Sequence record: LC727695.1
Strand: one strand, 5' to 3'
DNA length: 64,000 bases
In this document: piece after piece, positions 7,451 to 42,716 of the stretch
How the letters are laid out: every line of letters starts with the position of its first letter
Numbering within the stretch: position 1 is the first letter of the stretch
The notes under the pieces: generated by a model
The model's database searches: none
What the model was told of the DNA's origin: nothing
The model's input: the letters and a program-made list of their open reading frames with translations, nothing else
Translations under genes and position numbers: made by a program

Positions 7451-7825
7451 TTAACCCCTATTAACAAAGATAAAATAATCTCGTAGTTCACCAGCTAAAT
7501 CTAATGGTTGATAATTATCACTACCATCATCATAAGGGATATAATCAGCACCTGCTTCTACAGCCGCTAAATATTCTTCCTCACCAACTGCTGGAATTAA
7601 ATGAAACGCTGGGCAATCGTCATTATTGCCATCTAGTATATCTAGCATGCCTGTAATGACACTATCTGCTACAGCCCTGTCCCGATCAGCTGGCTCTGTA
7701 AATTGATCAAGTTTAGAGTTATTGATAGCATTATCACGCATATTGACAACACTACTAATAAATAGTTCTTTAACTTGTTCCTGTGTTACAGGTTTAACAT
7801 TACCATCGCCTTCAAAATAGATCAT
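7451..7825 (-). CDS. hypothetical protein, paralog of 7870-8556
   Basis: shared LDGN...P.F.LIP.V..E...G..Y.P...D..G.LR motif. Confidence 0.75.
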   Translation of the reverse strand: MIYFEGDGNVKPVTQEQVKELFISSVVNMRDNAINNSKLDQFTEPADRDRAVADSVITGMLDILDGNNDDCPAFHLIPAVGEEEYLAAVEAGADYIPYDDGSDNYQPLDLAGELRDYFIFVNRG

Positions 7826-39710: not shown

Positions 39711-39887
39711 TTAATTATTAAAAGATAAATCATAATCACTTTGTCTGCGATTCGGATTAACAGGATCAGGATATTTTCCAGTTTTGATAACTTCTTTTAT
39801 AGCTCTAAAATCACGTTCTAGAAAATCTAGTTTTTTAACTAACTCTTTTTCTAATTCTTTATTGAGTAGTCTTCTTAATTTGCTCAT
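39711..39887 (-). CDS. 58-aa protein (not in ORF track)
   Basis: MSKLRRLLNKELEKELVKKLDFLERDFRAIKEVIKTGKYPD...; fills the gap, 29-nt overlap with upstream gene. Confidence 0.55.
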   Translation of the reverse strand: MSKLRRLLNKELEKELVKKLDFLERDFRAIKEVIKTGKYPDPVNPNRRQSDYDLSFNN

Positions 39888-40254
39888 CTACGTATACTCT
39901 TACAATGAACCAATTGATTAGGCCAAAACCTTTTGGTGTGATGGTAATGTCATCTTTATATCCATTTTTAGTGATTACATTACGTAATACTTTAATTGCT
40001 TCAGGTGGAATAAGATTAGCATTACCAGTAACACTATACTCGAAATAATAACCTACACCTGGTAAATAACCTGATGCAATCTGGTTAGTACCTGTGATAT
40101 TACTAACGTGTTGGAAGTCACTAAAAGCATTCTTGTAGAATAACAAAATATTAGGAATTACTTCATCCCTAATAGTAGAACTAGTAATGGCATCCGCCGA
40201 TGGAAAATAAGGTACTAATTCATCTGTTACATTGGTGCTATTAATATCGGACAT
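39859..40254 (-). CDS. hypothetical protein (FPS family), first gene after early promoter
   Basis: GAGGA SD. Confidence 0.7.
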   Translation of the reverse strand: MSDINSTNVTDELVPYFPSADAITSSTIRDEVIPNILLFYKNAFSDFQHVSNITGTNQIASGYLPGVGYYFEYSVTGNANLIPPEAIKVLRNVITKNGYKDDITITPKGFGLINWFIVRVYVDEQIKKTTQ

Positions 40255-40300
40255 AATCTTTTCCTCATTATAAAAGGATAAATATCTTTATGGTAATCCT

Positions 40301-40325
40301 GTAATATAGATTTAAATTAATTTAT
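40301..40325 (-). promoter_or_regulatory. phiKZ-type early promoter
   Basis: minus strand TTTAAATCTATATTAC. Confidence 0.75.
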
Positions 40326-40337
40326 AATGAATGGCAT

Positions 40338-40362
40338 AAAGGAGCCCCTGGTGGGCTCCTTT
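40338..40362. terminator. intrinsic terminator (possibly bidirectional)
   Basis: AAAGGAGCCC-N5-GGGCTCCTTT. Confidence 0.9.
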
Positions 40363-40525
40363 AATGTAATAGGTCCGACCCCTATCTAGAGGTCGGTGAG
40401 TAGCAAGGCACCGTAGTTGGGGTTCGTGTCGTTCCTGACGATACTTTAGTACCCCGGTTTATTTACGACTGGATCACCCCCTTAAAGTGCAGTGCGTTTT
40501 ACGCAAACTGCCTTGCTCTATATCA
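40363..40525 (-). ncRNA. candidate structured non-coding RNA of unknown class
   Basis: no ORF; 77/150 GC over 40371-40520 in an AT-rich genome; several nested helices; G-U pairs favour the minus strand; terminator directly downstream. Confidence 0.6.
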
Positions 40526-40604
40526 TTGCACTGTGCGTATTTTTATTCGTTAGCTAATCTTATGACTTAGAGTTATATTTACATACCCCTTAAGGAAAAA
40601 TGCA

Positions 40605-42716
40605 ATGATAGACTCATTTAGGAAGCTAATGGGCTCGCTATCAATTACTGAAACTGATCAAGAAATTATCATCAGTGGTTTTGATGGTGCTGCATTCATT
40701 AGAGATATTAACAAGTATTGGCGAACCACTAAATTAGCTACGCAGTTATTTAACACGGTTAGTCGTCGTAGTATTTCATTTTATAAATTCTTTGCTCCTG
40801 AAATATATTACATGCTAGAAGCAGTAAAGAATTATAGAAGTAGATACATCTCTATTAAAACTGTTAATGCCATCCGTGAAGCAATGCTTCAATATACCTG
40901 GTTAAAAAATACTCGTCCTGTAGATACCAACTCTGTACCAGGTAGACTCAATTTCAAGATGTTAGACAAATTGACATTTACACCAGATGAGTCTCAAAAA
41001 GCTTATTTTGAAAATTATAATTATCGAATTGACCAGTATGGTTTACGTGGTGATATTGTTGCAGGTAAACCTGGTACTGGTAAGACATTCATGACGATGG
41101 CTATTGCTGAAATGGTTGAGTCGGATATCATTATAGTTGTTTGTGAAAAGAAGTCTATTGATCTAATATGGAAGCCATCTATTATTGAGATGTATAAGGA
41201 AAGACAAAAAGTATGGTCGACCATTGATGATAAAGCCTACAACGGTCAAAGAATACTTATATCCCATTACCAGGCGCAAGATAAAATAATTGATCTATTA
41301 AGAAGCGGTATATTCAAAGGTAAGAACATTACGGTGATTCTGGATGAATCACACAATATGAACGATCCTAATTCTGCACAATCTCTTAAGTTCCAGCAAA
41401 TATGTTTTATGTCTAACTCTAATAACAGATTATTAGCGTCAGGTACCCCTGTTAAAGCACTTGGTTCTGAATTAGTAAGTGCATTAAGAGTATTAGACGA
41501 TCTCTTCACCAATGAGGTTGAAGAACGTTTTAAGAAAGCATTTGGAAAAGAGACACAGAAAGGATTAGATATTGTCCAACATCGCTTTGGGTTAATTGCG
41601 TACGTCATTGAAAAGAAAGATACTGAGGTTTTACCACCGAGGATAAAAGCGTATCGTATCAAGATACCAAATGGATCACAGTATACTCTTAATGCCATTA
41701 AACGTGATTGTGAAGCTTTTATTAGAGAACGTGTAAAGTTCTATGCTGCGCGCCGACCAGAAGATGAGAAGTATTGGGCTAAACTAATGGCGATACACGA
41801 GAACTCTCTTAAGACCCAGGCGCAGAAAGATGGTTTCGCTCGCTATAAGAATTTGATTAAAATAATTCAGAAGAATCAAGACCCGCGATACATTGGTGAA
41901 GAAATTAAAGAATCTAACCAATATGAAAAAATGTTTATAGAGCCAACTTTACCTCGTAATGAAATAGCTGCTTTTAGAGATATTAAATCAGTTATAAAAT
42001 ACGTTATGCTAAAGATACAAGGTGAATGTTTGGGAAGGGTTTTAGGTGCTAAACGCATTCAGTGCCATGTGGACATGGTACCGTATATTGACTGGGTTGG
42101 TATCACTGAATCAACTATGAAGAAAACGATTGCATTTACATCGTTTGTTGAGGTTGTTGATACTGTTGATAAGTACACCAATAAATTAGGTATGCATCCG
42201 GCGGTGGTGTATGGTAAAACCAATGACAATTTACCTCAAATAATCAGTAGATTTGAGAAAGACCCTAAATTAAATCCATTGGTAGCTACATATGCTTCCC
42301 TTTCAACAGCGGTCCGTATGACGATGGCTGATACTATGGTGACAATTAATTCACCGTTTAGGCATTACATTCTAGAACAAGCTATTGCTCGAATTTACCG
42401 TAAAGGTCAGGATTCACAAACAGTCGTATATCAATGTACTCTCGATACAGAAGATGAACCGAATATCTCAACAAGGTCAGATGACATTCTAAAATGGAGT
42501 CAGGCAATGGTTGAAGCTATTATGGGTATTAAATCTCCATTTGAGATCACAGAGTCATTAGAAAGTTATGTTGATAAAAATAATAATTTTGATGAAAATA
42601 AAATCATTTATCAGATGCTAAAAGAATCATTTGAGAAGTATGATATCGCAATTGATTTTAATGACTTTGATACACGTATGTATAAACCATATCAGCCCGC
42701 ATATATGCGGTTTTAA
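40605..42716 (+). CDS. SF2 (SNF2/DEAD-like) helicase
   Basis: GKPGTGKT, ILDESH, SGTP, QAIARIYRKGQ. Confidence 0.9.
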   Translation: MIDSFRKLMGSLSITETDQEIIISGFDGAAFIRDINKYWRTTKLATQLFNTVSRRSISFYKFFAPEIYYMLEAVKNYRSRYISIKTVNAIREAMLQYTWLKNTRPVDTNSVPGRLNFKMLDKLTFTPDESQKAYFENYNYRIDQYGLRGDIVAGKPGTGKTFMTMAIAEMVESDIIIVVCEKKSIDLIWKPSIIEMYKERQKVWSTIDDKAYNGQRILISHYQAQDKIIDLLRSGIFKGKNITVILDESHNMNDPNSAQSLKFQQICFMSNSNNRLLASGTPVKALGSELVSALRVLDDLFTNEVEERFKKAFGKETQKGLDIVQHRFGLIAYVIEKKDTEVLPPRIKAYRIKIPNGSQYTLNAIKRDCEAFIRERVKFYAARRPEDEKYWAKLMAIHENSLKTQAQKDGFARYKNLIKIIQKNQDPRYIGEEIKESNQYEKMFIEPTLPRNEIAAFRDIKSVIKYVMLKIQGECLGRVLGAKRIQCHVDMVPYIDWVGITESTMKKTIAFTSFVEVVDTVDKYTNKLGMHPAVVYGKTNDNLPQIISRFEKDPKLNPLVATYASLSTAVRMTMADTMVTINSPFRHYILEQAIARIYRKGQDSQTVVYQCTLDTEDEPNISTRSDDILKWSQAMVEAIMGIKSPFEITESLESYVDKNNNFDENKIIYQMLKESFEKYDIAIDFNDFDTRMYKPYQPAYMRF

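Follow-up and report, generated by a model that had tools for sequence, protein, structure and literature searches.

A structured RNA family of phiKZ-like Pseudomonas jumbo phages with a conserved box complementary to the 3' end of host 16S rRNA

The window analysed here, the whole 64,000-nucleotide (nt) stretch from sequence record LC727695.1, is the reverse complement of Pseudomonas phage phiKZ (NC_004629) at 100% identity, and ~45 near-identical isolates match it as well. A phiKZ record position equals 253372 minus the window position, and the minus strand of the window is the plus strand of phiKZ. Our subject is a structured RNA gene on the minus strand, located in the 350-nt gap (40255-40604) between PHIKZ204 and PHIKZ203 (Table 1). 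The latter encodes gp203, a virion-packaged SNF2 helicase. The gap holds no open reading frame (ORF) of at least 40 amino acids (aa), and its GC content peaks at 0.507 over the element compared with ~0.30-0.35 in the surroundings, as expected from an earlier note which, working from the letters of the DNA, had described an ORF-free stretch of 51% GC (40363-40525) and proposed a stand-alone, structured non-coding RNA (ncRNA) with its own terminator. Covariation among relatives, a promoter and a terminator in the members examined and a published RNA 3' end all agree with that proposal. The strand and, apart from the inner domain, the fold were correctly described, and the key feature was overlooked, namely an invariant box complementary to the 3' end of 16S ribosomal RNA (rRNA). 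The window has a single copy of the gene. Scanning the window against Rfam 15 gave zero matches at gathering score and, at E-values up to 10, only noise at or outside the edges of the RNA core, while ARAGORN reported 0 genes for transfer RNA (tRNA) or transfer-messenger RNA (tmRNA); the RNA is accordingly neither of these, nor a riboswitch or known ribozyme, as had been assumed.

A 201-nt stretch of the locus folds at -72 kcal/mol (z = -4.3, 0/200 shuffles as stable), in agreement with the folding proposed before. Stability is equal on both strands, so energy alone cannot pick the strand. We identified homologues of the phiKZ RNA, 25 members with 22 distinct box sequences, in which the helices are conserved and covary. 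Covariation was scored in 16 members aligned against a covariance model; MAFFT alignments were dropped for structural purposes owing to register shifts in P1, P2 and P4. Standard pairs are formed in 97.0% of the cells and 19/23 pairs show changes on both sides, with a covariation score of 0.554 vs 0.193 ± 0.019 for shuffles (0/500 reach 0.554) and at most ~0.12 (0.115) for slid controls. RNAalifold independently gives P1, P2, P3 and P4 from the same alignment, and compensatory changes are also evident in the raw, unaligned sequences. The closing helix P1 exists in several covarying versions, AGCAAGGCA/UGCCUUGCU (phiKZ), GUCAAGG/CCUUGAC, GUACAGGC/GCCUGUAC and GUGUUGGUAG/CUACCAACAC. Compensatory changes affect 2/4 pairs of P2, and both-side changes are found in all five pairs of P3 and all five of P4. 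The inner pairs of P1 (GGCA/UGCC) and an extended P2 (GCAG/CUGC) are alternatives that both fit the data. A hairpin at the position of P6 is confined to the subclade of phiKZ, PA1C, PhiPA3, 201phi2-1 and Phabio. A helix-45-like P5 (YCG with CGR) closing P3/P4 was left out of the model, as it has 3-4 bp only and inconsistent registers.

Several elements of the earlier description were located as drawn, specifically the closing helix, the UGCGU-AAA-ACGCA hairpin, the 9-bp hairpin and the terminator. Its GGGG/CCCC inner domain has a comparative counterpart in P3, but the GGGG that it used lies in the 16S-antisense box, which is unpaired in the consensus. The nested GUCGU/ACGAC and GGUAC-UAAA-GUAUC helices can be drawn in phiKZ and are not conserved in relatives. 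Regarding the strand, G-U outnumbers A-C by 15 to 5 on the minus strand across the family, with two of the A-C cells being an alignment register artefact, and this upholds the minus-strand preference put forward on the same grounds.

The sole invariant unpaired segment is the family core AGGRGGUGAUCCAG (40482-40469 in phiKZ), and the box that contains it is placed in an unpaired junction of the consensus structure. Compared with real Pseudomonas 16S 3' ends (...GUAGCCGUAGGGGAACCUGCGGCUGGAUCACCUCCUUA-3'), the box is complementary to approximately nt 1522-1542 of 16S rRNA, which comprise the anti-Shine-Dalgarno (anti-SD) sequence and the 3' strand of helix 45. The contiguous run measures 14-21 nt in 25/25 members, and its distance from the 16S 3' terminus is 0-3 nt (0-1 nt in ten members measured separately). 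The next-best run on either strand of the window has 12 nt. The predicted duplex of the RNA with 16S rRNA amounts to -29 to -40 kcal/mol, vs 4-8 kcal/mol needed to open the box. Among the 22 distinct boxes the core varies in three columns: one has A or G (12 to 10) facing U1537, one has a single A-to-G change facing U1528 and, in the third, Phabio has U for the final G. The two columns after the core are C or U and face G1526 and G1525, and the column before it is mostly A or G and faces U1541. Outside the core and these flanking columns the sequence is random, and mean column identity elsewhere is 59% in a 7-member alignment. Variants within the duplex all preserve pairing and are wobble-neutral; breaks occur at the duplex ends only. 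Neither a correctly spaced start codon nor a conserved ORF follows the box.

A second segment of the RNA, in its 3' half, also resembles antisense 16S rRNA (Table 1), with local alignment to the 16S reverse complement giving p = 0.006 for phiKZ and 0.004-0.044 for four other members (500 shuffles). The P1 5' arm and P2 are without a 16S counterpart, and the similarity is split by the inserted, covarying P3/P4. Because the box and the 3' half are collinear with antisense 16S rRNA, the gene looks like an inverted, captured 16S 3' end in which the helix-45 loop has been replaced by P3/P4. A separate observation concerns LUZ19-like phages, whose head scaffolding gene (e.g., NC_010326, 23906-23926) has a 20/21 nt match to antisense 16S nt 1516-1536 (GGTGATCCAGCCGCAGGTTCC). 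This match lies within a coding region and is conserved across many Phikmvviruses; with E = 4, it may be due to chance.

Table 1. Features of the RNA gene and its surroundings (window coordinates; 3' ends and promoters named T or P followed by three digits are those of Putzeys et al.).
Feature	Position	Strand	Remarks
16S-antisense box UAAGGGGGUGAUCCAGUCGUA	40484-40464	-	21 contiguous pairs (3 G-U) with the last 21 nt of Pseudomonas 16S rRNA
P1-closed RNA core	40402..40517	-	P1 = 40517-40509 with 40410-40402
P2 hairpin UGCGU-AAA-ACGCA (40505-40493) with CAG/CUG extension	40490..40508	-	16/16 members; RNAalifold
P3 (GGGG 40455-40452 with CCCC 40422-40419) enclosing P4	40419..40455	-	comparative
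P4 hairpin UCGU-CAGGA-ACGA	40441-40429	-	GNRA loop in relatives
Second 16S-like segment: junction AACUACGG, P1 3' arm, ACUCACC	40395..40418	-	collinear with antisense 16S ~nt 1490-1515
P6 accessory hairpin CCGACCUCU-AGAU-AGGGGUCGG	40375..40396	-	9 bp; one U-G pair (C-A on the plus strand)
Putative A-rich/TAC upstream promoter element AAAAATAC	40537..40544	-	19 nt before the predicted start
Conserved box AATGATATAG, TAT(A)G start-site motif of the phage non-virion RNA polymerase	40518..40527	-	predicted 5' end G40518
Mapped RNA 3' end, phiKZ T095	40371	-	record 213001, record plus strand; transcription termination site table of Putzeys et al.
GC-rich terminator hairpin (stem 40359-40341), then UUUAU	40337..40363	-	predicts a primary transcript of ~182 nt
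AAATCTATATTAC, early-promoter-like motif for PHIKZ204, 3' of the terminator	40301..40313	-	context, outside the RNA
PHIKZ204	39859-40254	-	
Helicase late promoter P107, start	40564	+	record 212808, record minus strand (Putzeys et al.)
PHIKZ203 (gp203)	40605-42716	+	SNF2 helicase

The RNA is probably an independent gene, with expression signals on the minus strand. TATAG (TATG in Noxifer-type phages) is invariant directly before P1 in the members examined, its G being the first base of P1, and an AAA..TAC-N19-TAT(A)G arrangement was found in most members. The same layout is present in the phiKZ middle promoters P005 and P014 (Putzeys et al., Table S3, PMC10914365), and TATG, which ends late and middle promoters of phiKZ, is a hallmark of start sites of the non-virion RNA polymerase (Putzeys et al., PMC10914365). 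Judged by these motifs, transcription is probably carried out by the phage non-virion RNA polymerase from a middle or late promoter of the TAT(A)G type. If transcribed, the promoter box AAUGAUAUAG (40518-40527, minus) would give AUG-AUA-UAG (Met-Ile-stop), which is probably a coincidence because the Psa21 box lacks the AUG. At the other end, every member examined has a terminal GC hairpin and, after it, UUUAUGYC or a similar sequence. The mapped 3' end T095 sits 4 nt past P6, predicting a species of ~148 nt; according to ONT-cappable-seq it is an orphan transcription termination site that belongs to no transcription unit (Putzeys et al., bioRxiv 10.1101/2023.10.13.562163; PMC10914365). T095 gives the RNA a single, indirect line of experimental support. 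The searchable literature yielded no paper describing the RNA, and a transposon-mutagenesis preprint is silent on intergenic regions.

The module formed by the terminator hairpin and TTATGCCGT (window 40334-40363) recurs in phiKZ-like genomes, in 2-5 places per record, and has the look of a compact stop-and-restart signal in which a terminator is joined to a TATG start site. BLASTN with the RNA of the uncultivated phage IMGVR_UViG_3300009194_000010 (L016/L185) matched only this generic terminator-plus-TATGCCGT module. In the same contig TTAAGTATTTGTTTGTGTA stands on both sides of the RNA gene (L016 2725-2990) and a second promoter-like ATTATATAG follows the terminator, where a second small unit may lie downstream.

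Concerning the neighbouring genes, the start of P107 leaves the plus strand of the RNA element outside the helicase messenger RNA (mRNA). Putzeys et al. list 50 nt upstream of the P107 start (window 40515-40564), and this region overlaps the predicted promoter of the RNA on the opposite strand, the two being back-to-back divergent promoters with ~30 bp in common. A AAATCTATATTAC-type motif, which resembles the phiKZ early promoter P012, is also located 3' of the terminator in Phabio, Psa21, D6 and others. The gp203 homologue in SL2 (MF805716, 74235-77165), PA1C, PS119XW and PhiPA3 matches in two pieces over ~2.9-3.2 kb vs 2.1 kb, and the PA1C helicase is annotated as two coding sequences. The helicase gene of these four phages seems to be split by ~0.8-1 kb of inserted DNA, which may be an intron or a homing element.

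All 25 members belong to the subclade of chimalliviruses (nucleus-forming phages) nearest phiKZ, and come from Phikzvirus, PA1C-like phages, PhiPA3, 201phi2-1, Phabio, Psa21/D6/RVTF4, Noxifer and uncultivated relatives. BLASTN of the phiKZ locus gave partial matches in PA1C-like phages, PhiPA3 and Phabio, whose loci show the same architecture on the equivalent strand with compensatory changes in the closing helix. The family was extended by pattern scans, by the helicase-gene neighbourhoods of named phages, by 80 helicase neighbourhoods from IMG/VR and by two covariance models (R1 and R2). Of 31 loci from an initial exact-pattern scan of viral contigs, 4 were real and the remainder were chance matches in keeping with the information content of the pattern; a metagenome pattern scan added one member. 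For the helicase survey an alignment query was used, since a single-protein search retrieved phiKZ only. Members were found at loci with the helicases closest to phiKZ gp203 (roughly >=40% identity, i.e., at least about that value), and ~55 more distant relatives, including phages of Xanthomonas, Ralstonia, Erwinia and E. coli, had no member within 10 kb of the helicase. A BLASTN search of the phage collection with the antisense 16S tail lacked the sensitivity to recover the family, and its matches were mostly rRNA contamination in 'phage' records. Gene order around the RNA varies: the neighbours on either side run on the opposite strand in PA1C and phiHQ, PhiPA3 has the helicase downstream, and the remaining members have other downstream genes again. 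Ralstonia phage RP12 contains AATAGTGATCCAG followed by a terminator and CTTTATGCCGT (L041 ~7478-7530), a locus detected by neither R1 nor R2; it may be a stripped-down remnant of the RNA unit without the GGAGG core, or a chance occurrence.

These data suggest that a phage RNA may act directly on host ribosomes. The reading that we favour, with a confidence half-way between doubt and acceptance, is that the locus is a self-contained gene for a structured ncRNA of ~150-180 nt (phiKZ plus strand ~212854-213035), which would act in trans through pairing of its box with the 3' tail of host 16S rRNA. According to this scheme, P1 would close a multi-branch core (P2 and P3/P4) that presents the unpaired 14-nt box. 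Having left the phage nucleus, the RNA would pair with the 3' tail of 16S rRNA, either in host 30S subunits or in its immature form, the box serving as a 'super Shine-Dalgarno' devoid of a start codon. Such pairing could mask the anti-SD sequence or dock the RNA on the subunit, and thereby modulate initiation or shield the 16S 3' end. As a consequence the RNA could compete with host initiation, mark or tether ribosomes, or keep nucleases or toxins off the 16S 3' end. The roles guessed by the earlier note (decoy, scaffold, ribozyme, replication or packaging RNA) received no specific support.

A number of points weigh against this interpretation. Pairing with 16S rRNA in cells, and its effect, are what we infer from complementarity and conservation. 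Thermodynamic folding gives the box an unpaired probability of only ~0.4, and RNAalifold pairs GGR with UCC inside it (40472-40482, minus) to form a 3-bp mini-hairpin with a GGUGA loop. The A/G column is also compatible with this invariant 3-bp mini-hairpin, and transitions are the commonest substitutions anyway, which leaves the wobble-only pattern suggestive and not decisive. The alignment used for covariation was fitted to the model's own structure and is biased towards it. On the side of the ribosome, pairing past 16S nt 1530 requires opening the base of helix 45 in the mature subunit. Furthermore, phiKZ genes themselves have SD sites (AAGGA before gp203, GAGGA before gp204), so a stoichiometric block of the anti-SD would harm the phage too. 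The known hosts are all Pseudomonas with one common 16S tail, which leaves no host difference for the box to track. Finally, ONT-cappable-seq called no transcription start site (TSS) for the RNA, which is likewise absent from the 17 phiKZ ncRNA candidates of Table S7 (Putzeys et al., PMC10914365), and the differential RNA-seq (dRNA-seq) and Grad-seq studies, with data 10 min into infection, do not report it. As for the GGR/UCC mini-hairpin, its invariance means that variation neither supports nor refutes it; it could gate access to the box.

The alternative that survives best, in our view unlikely and still worth serious weight, is that the RNA is an exapted relic, an inverted captured fragment of an rRNA operon that became a functional structured RNA, the complementarity being inherited and the box kept for a use other than 16S rRNA, such as binding of a phage or host protein, a tertiary contact or the mini-hairpin. 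The collinearity with antisense 16S rRNA in two segments is in its favour, phages do capture 16S 3' ends (as Aeromonas phage AP1, in sense orientation and followed by tRNA-Ile and tRNA-Ala), and the invariant mini-hairpin would explain the A/G column equally. However, the surroundings have diverged to a mean column identity of 59%, while the core stays near-invariant in 22 distinct sequences, with one A/G column and two single-sequence changes. The flanking C/U columns vary mainly in a wobble-compatible manner, which neither a protein site nor a 3-bp hairpin predicts, and no member has its complementarity starting more than 3 nt (range 0-3 nt) from the 16S 3' terminus.

An improbable alternative is that the functional RNA is transcribed from the plus strand, mimicking the 16S 3' minor domain (...CUGGAUCACCYCCUUA). 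It would then serve as a decoy, either offering mRNAs a false anti-SD or diverting enzymes or toxins that have the 16S 3' end as their target. The equal stability of the fold on both strands would permit this, as would the A/T runs on both sides of the phiKZ terminator hairpin, and AP1 demonstrates that sense 16S fragments exist in phages. Against it, the mapped 3' end, the promoter box and the U-tracts are all on the minus strand, where G-U also exceeds A-C by 15 to 5; the helicase TSS lies downstream of the element and no known plus transcript covers it; and the PA1C-type terminators lack a plus-strand U-tract. Additionally, CCCCC, as 10/22 boxes would read, would mismatch GGAGG SD sites, and the helix-45 loop that is recognised by 16S-directed enzymes has been replaced.

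It is very improbable that the element is a cis-acting 5' leader, attenuator or riboswitch which controls PHIKZ204 and downstream genes by conditional termination. In phiKZ the order RNA, terminator, gp204 on one strand would suit such a role, and many short phiKZ RNAs do arise from premature termination in 5' untranslated regions (UTRs), but PA1C and phiHQ have no adjacent co-directional downstream gene, that of PhiPA3 is the helicase and those of the others differ. The early-promoter-like motif between terminator and gp204 separates the two, and RNAalifold found no conserved alternative antiterminator pairing in the 16-member alignment. The least probable of all is a very short mRNA with the box as the strong ribosome-binding site (RBS) of a micro-ORF, or an RNA titrating Rsm/CsrA through a GGA site, for in spite of the perfect extended SD within the box and the CAGGAGG of Noxifer-type boxes, close to an Rsm site, the sole conserved start-like codon is a GUG inside the box at spacing -1 (a start is sought 4-12 nt past the SD core, in a conserved frame), the conceptual peptides, 4 to >57 aa long, bear no relation to one another past MIQ (MIH in Phabio), and each RNA has a single motif, located in a junction and not in hairpin loops, with 10/22 boxes reading GGGGG without a GGA core, unlike the several hairpin-loop GGAs of RsmY/RsmZ-type RNAs.

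How phiKZ-like phages seize translation is an open question; their transcription takes place in a protein 'nucleus' and they have to compete for cytoplasmic ribosomes. If pairing of the RNA with the 16S tail is true, it would add a new layer of host takeover, in which a phage RNA is directed at rRNA, and would set a natural precedent for inhibiting or tagging ribosomes by antisense, a virus having made a piece of host rRNA into its own weapon or tool. Should the pairing prove wrong, what stands is a previously undescribed and well-supported structured RNA family (25 members, 19 covarying pairs) from therapeutic phages of medical relevance. Rfam lacks the family, and so does the searchable literature, where a long, wobble-tolerant antisense match to the anti-SD end of 16S rRNA is also without natural precedent.

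Families of Rfam 15, among them riboswitches, ribozymes, 6S, Y RNA, tmRNA and known small RNAs (sRNAs), gave no match at gathering score, and ARAGORN detected no cloverleaf or tmRNA architecture. A plain captured rRNA fragment would be contiguous, nearly identical and free of independent constraint, and what was found are two segments around the covarying P3/P4; descent of the gene from a captured rRNA fragment is nevertheless likely. The nearest general class is that of trans-acting base-pairing sRNAs, including those of phages, with which the RNA shares an intrinsic terminator, a predicted promoter of its own and a conserved single-stranded seed within a structured scaffold. Specifically, the seed shows pairing-preserving variation and a moderate predicted accessibility, and the transcription unit has a promoter-like box and a terminator in the members examined and a mapped 3' end, its TSS not being among the published calls. 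It differs from these sRNAs in that the putative target would be rRNA rather than mRNA and in its much longer seed. With the SD:anti-SD pairing of mRNAs, the RNA has in common the partner (the 16S 3' tail) and a GGAGG-type core. Unlike SD sites, the phage box would pair over 14-21 nt instead of 4-9 nt and reach the 3' strand of helix 45, and it lies without a start codon or ORF in the junction of a closed, terminator-ended ncRNA; no gene RBS in the window exceeds ~10-12 nt of 16S complementarity.

Viral or designed RNAs that dock on the small subunit by pairing with rRNA are known from other systems. A loop of the internal ribosome entry site (IRES) of the hepatitis C virus (HCV) type pairs with expansion segment 7 of 18S rRNA, and synthetic antisense oligomers and peptide nucleic acids (PNAs) target 16S rRNA. 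The IRES acts in cis on the viral mRNA and the oligomers are artificial, in contrast to the phage RNA; a natural trans-acting RNA of this kind from bacteria or phages was not found in the searchable literature. The ncRNA candidates reported for phiKZ and 201phi2-1 (5'UTR_gp40, 3'UTR_PHIKZ298, and sRNA005 upstream of gp182/gp277) are also short, structured and delimited by terminators, but represent other loci and sequences, none reported with 16S complementarity, and the lists do not include the phiKZ RNA. The conserved sRNA of the 201phi2-1 paper maps to a different locus.

Two further phage sequences bear directly on the 16S 3' end. The T4-like Aeromonas phage AP1 (MT713136) carries 25/27 nt of it (L164 2501-2527), in this case in sense orientation, directly followed by tRNA-Ile and tRNA-Ala (L164 2265-2527), with no P1-P4 scaffold seen. 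By its gene order the segment looks like a captured host rRNA-operon spacer, and it illustrates a route by which such sequences may enter phage genomes. The second is an 80-nt RNA of phage PAK_P3, detected as a discrete species by ONT-cappable-seq (record 85937-86017, plus) at the head of a tRNA cluster (Putzeys et al., Table S7, PMC10914365). We found that it contains GAGGAGGUGAUCCAGC, with 16 nt of complementarity to the 16S tail (NC_022970; L168 ~938-1018), and that Pakpunaviruses conserve UAGGAGGUGAUCCAGU at the same place with a C/U wobble (C2-10_Ab1, L169 ~300-360). Like the phiKZ family, these phages thus have a (U/G)AGGAGGUGAUCCAG(C/U) box with the same C/U wobble column, and their host is also P. 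aeruginosa. Unlike it, they are unrelated ~90-kb myoviruses, the promoter is sigma-70-like, the RNA precedes tRNA genes, and (G/U)AGGAGGUGAUCCAG(C/U)AUCUCC can form a GGAG...CUCC hairpin, read from the sequence and absent from the minimum free energy (MFE) fold. Model R2 does not detect the PAK_P3 RNA, so that any relation to the phiKZ family is convergent or very distant. We tentatively propose, with a confidence that falls somewhat short of an even balance, that these would be the first known natural trans-acting RNAs directed against the anti-SD tail, present in nucleus-forming Pseudomonas jumbo phages and independently in PAK_P3 and Pakpunavirus, which would hybridise to the last 14-21 nt of host 16S rRNA in order to reprogram, mark or protect small subunits while infection proceeds; the gene itself would derive from an inverted, captured piece of the host rRNA operon.

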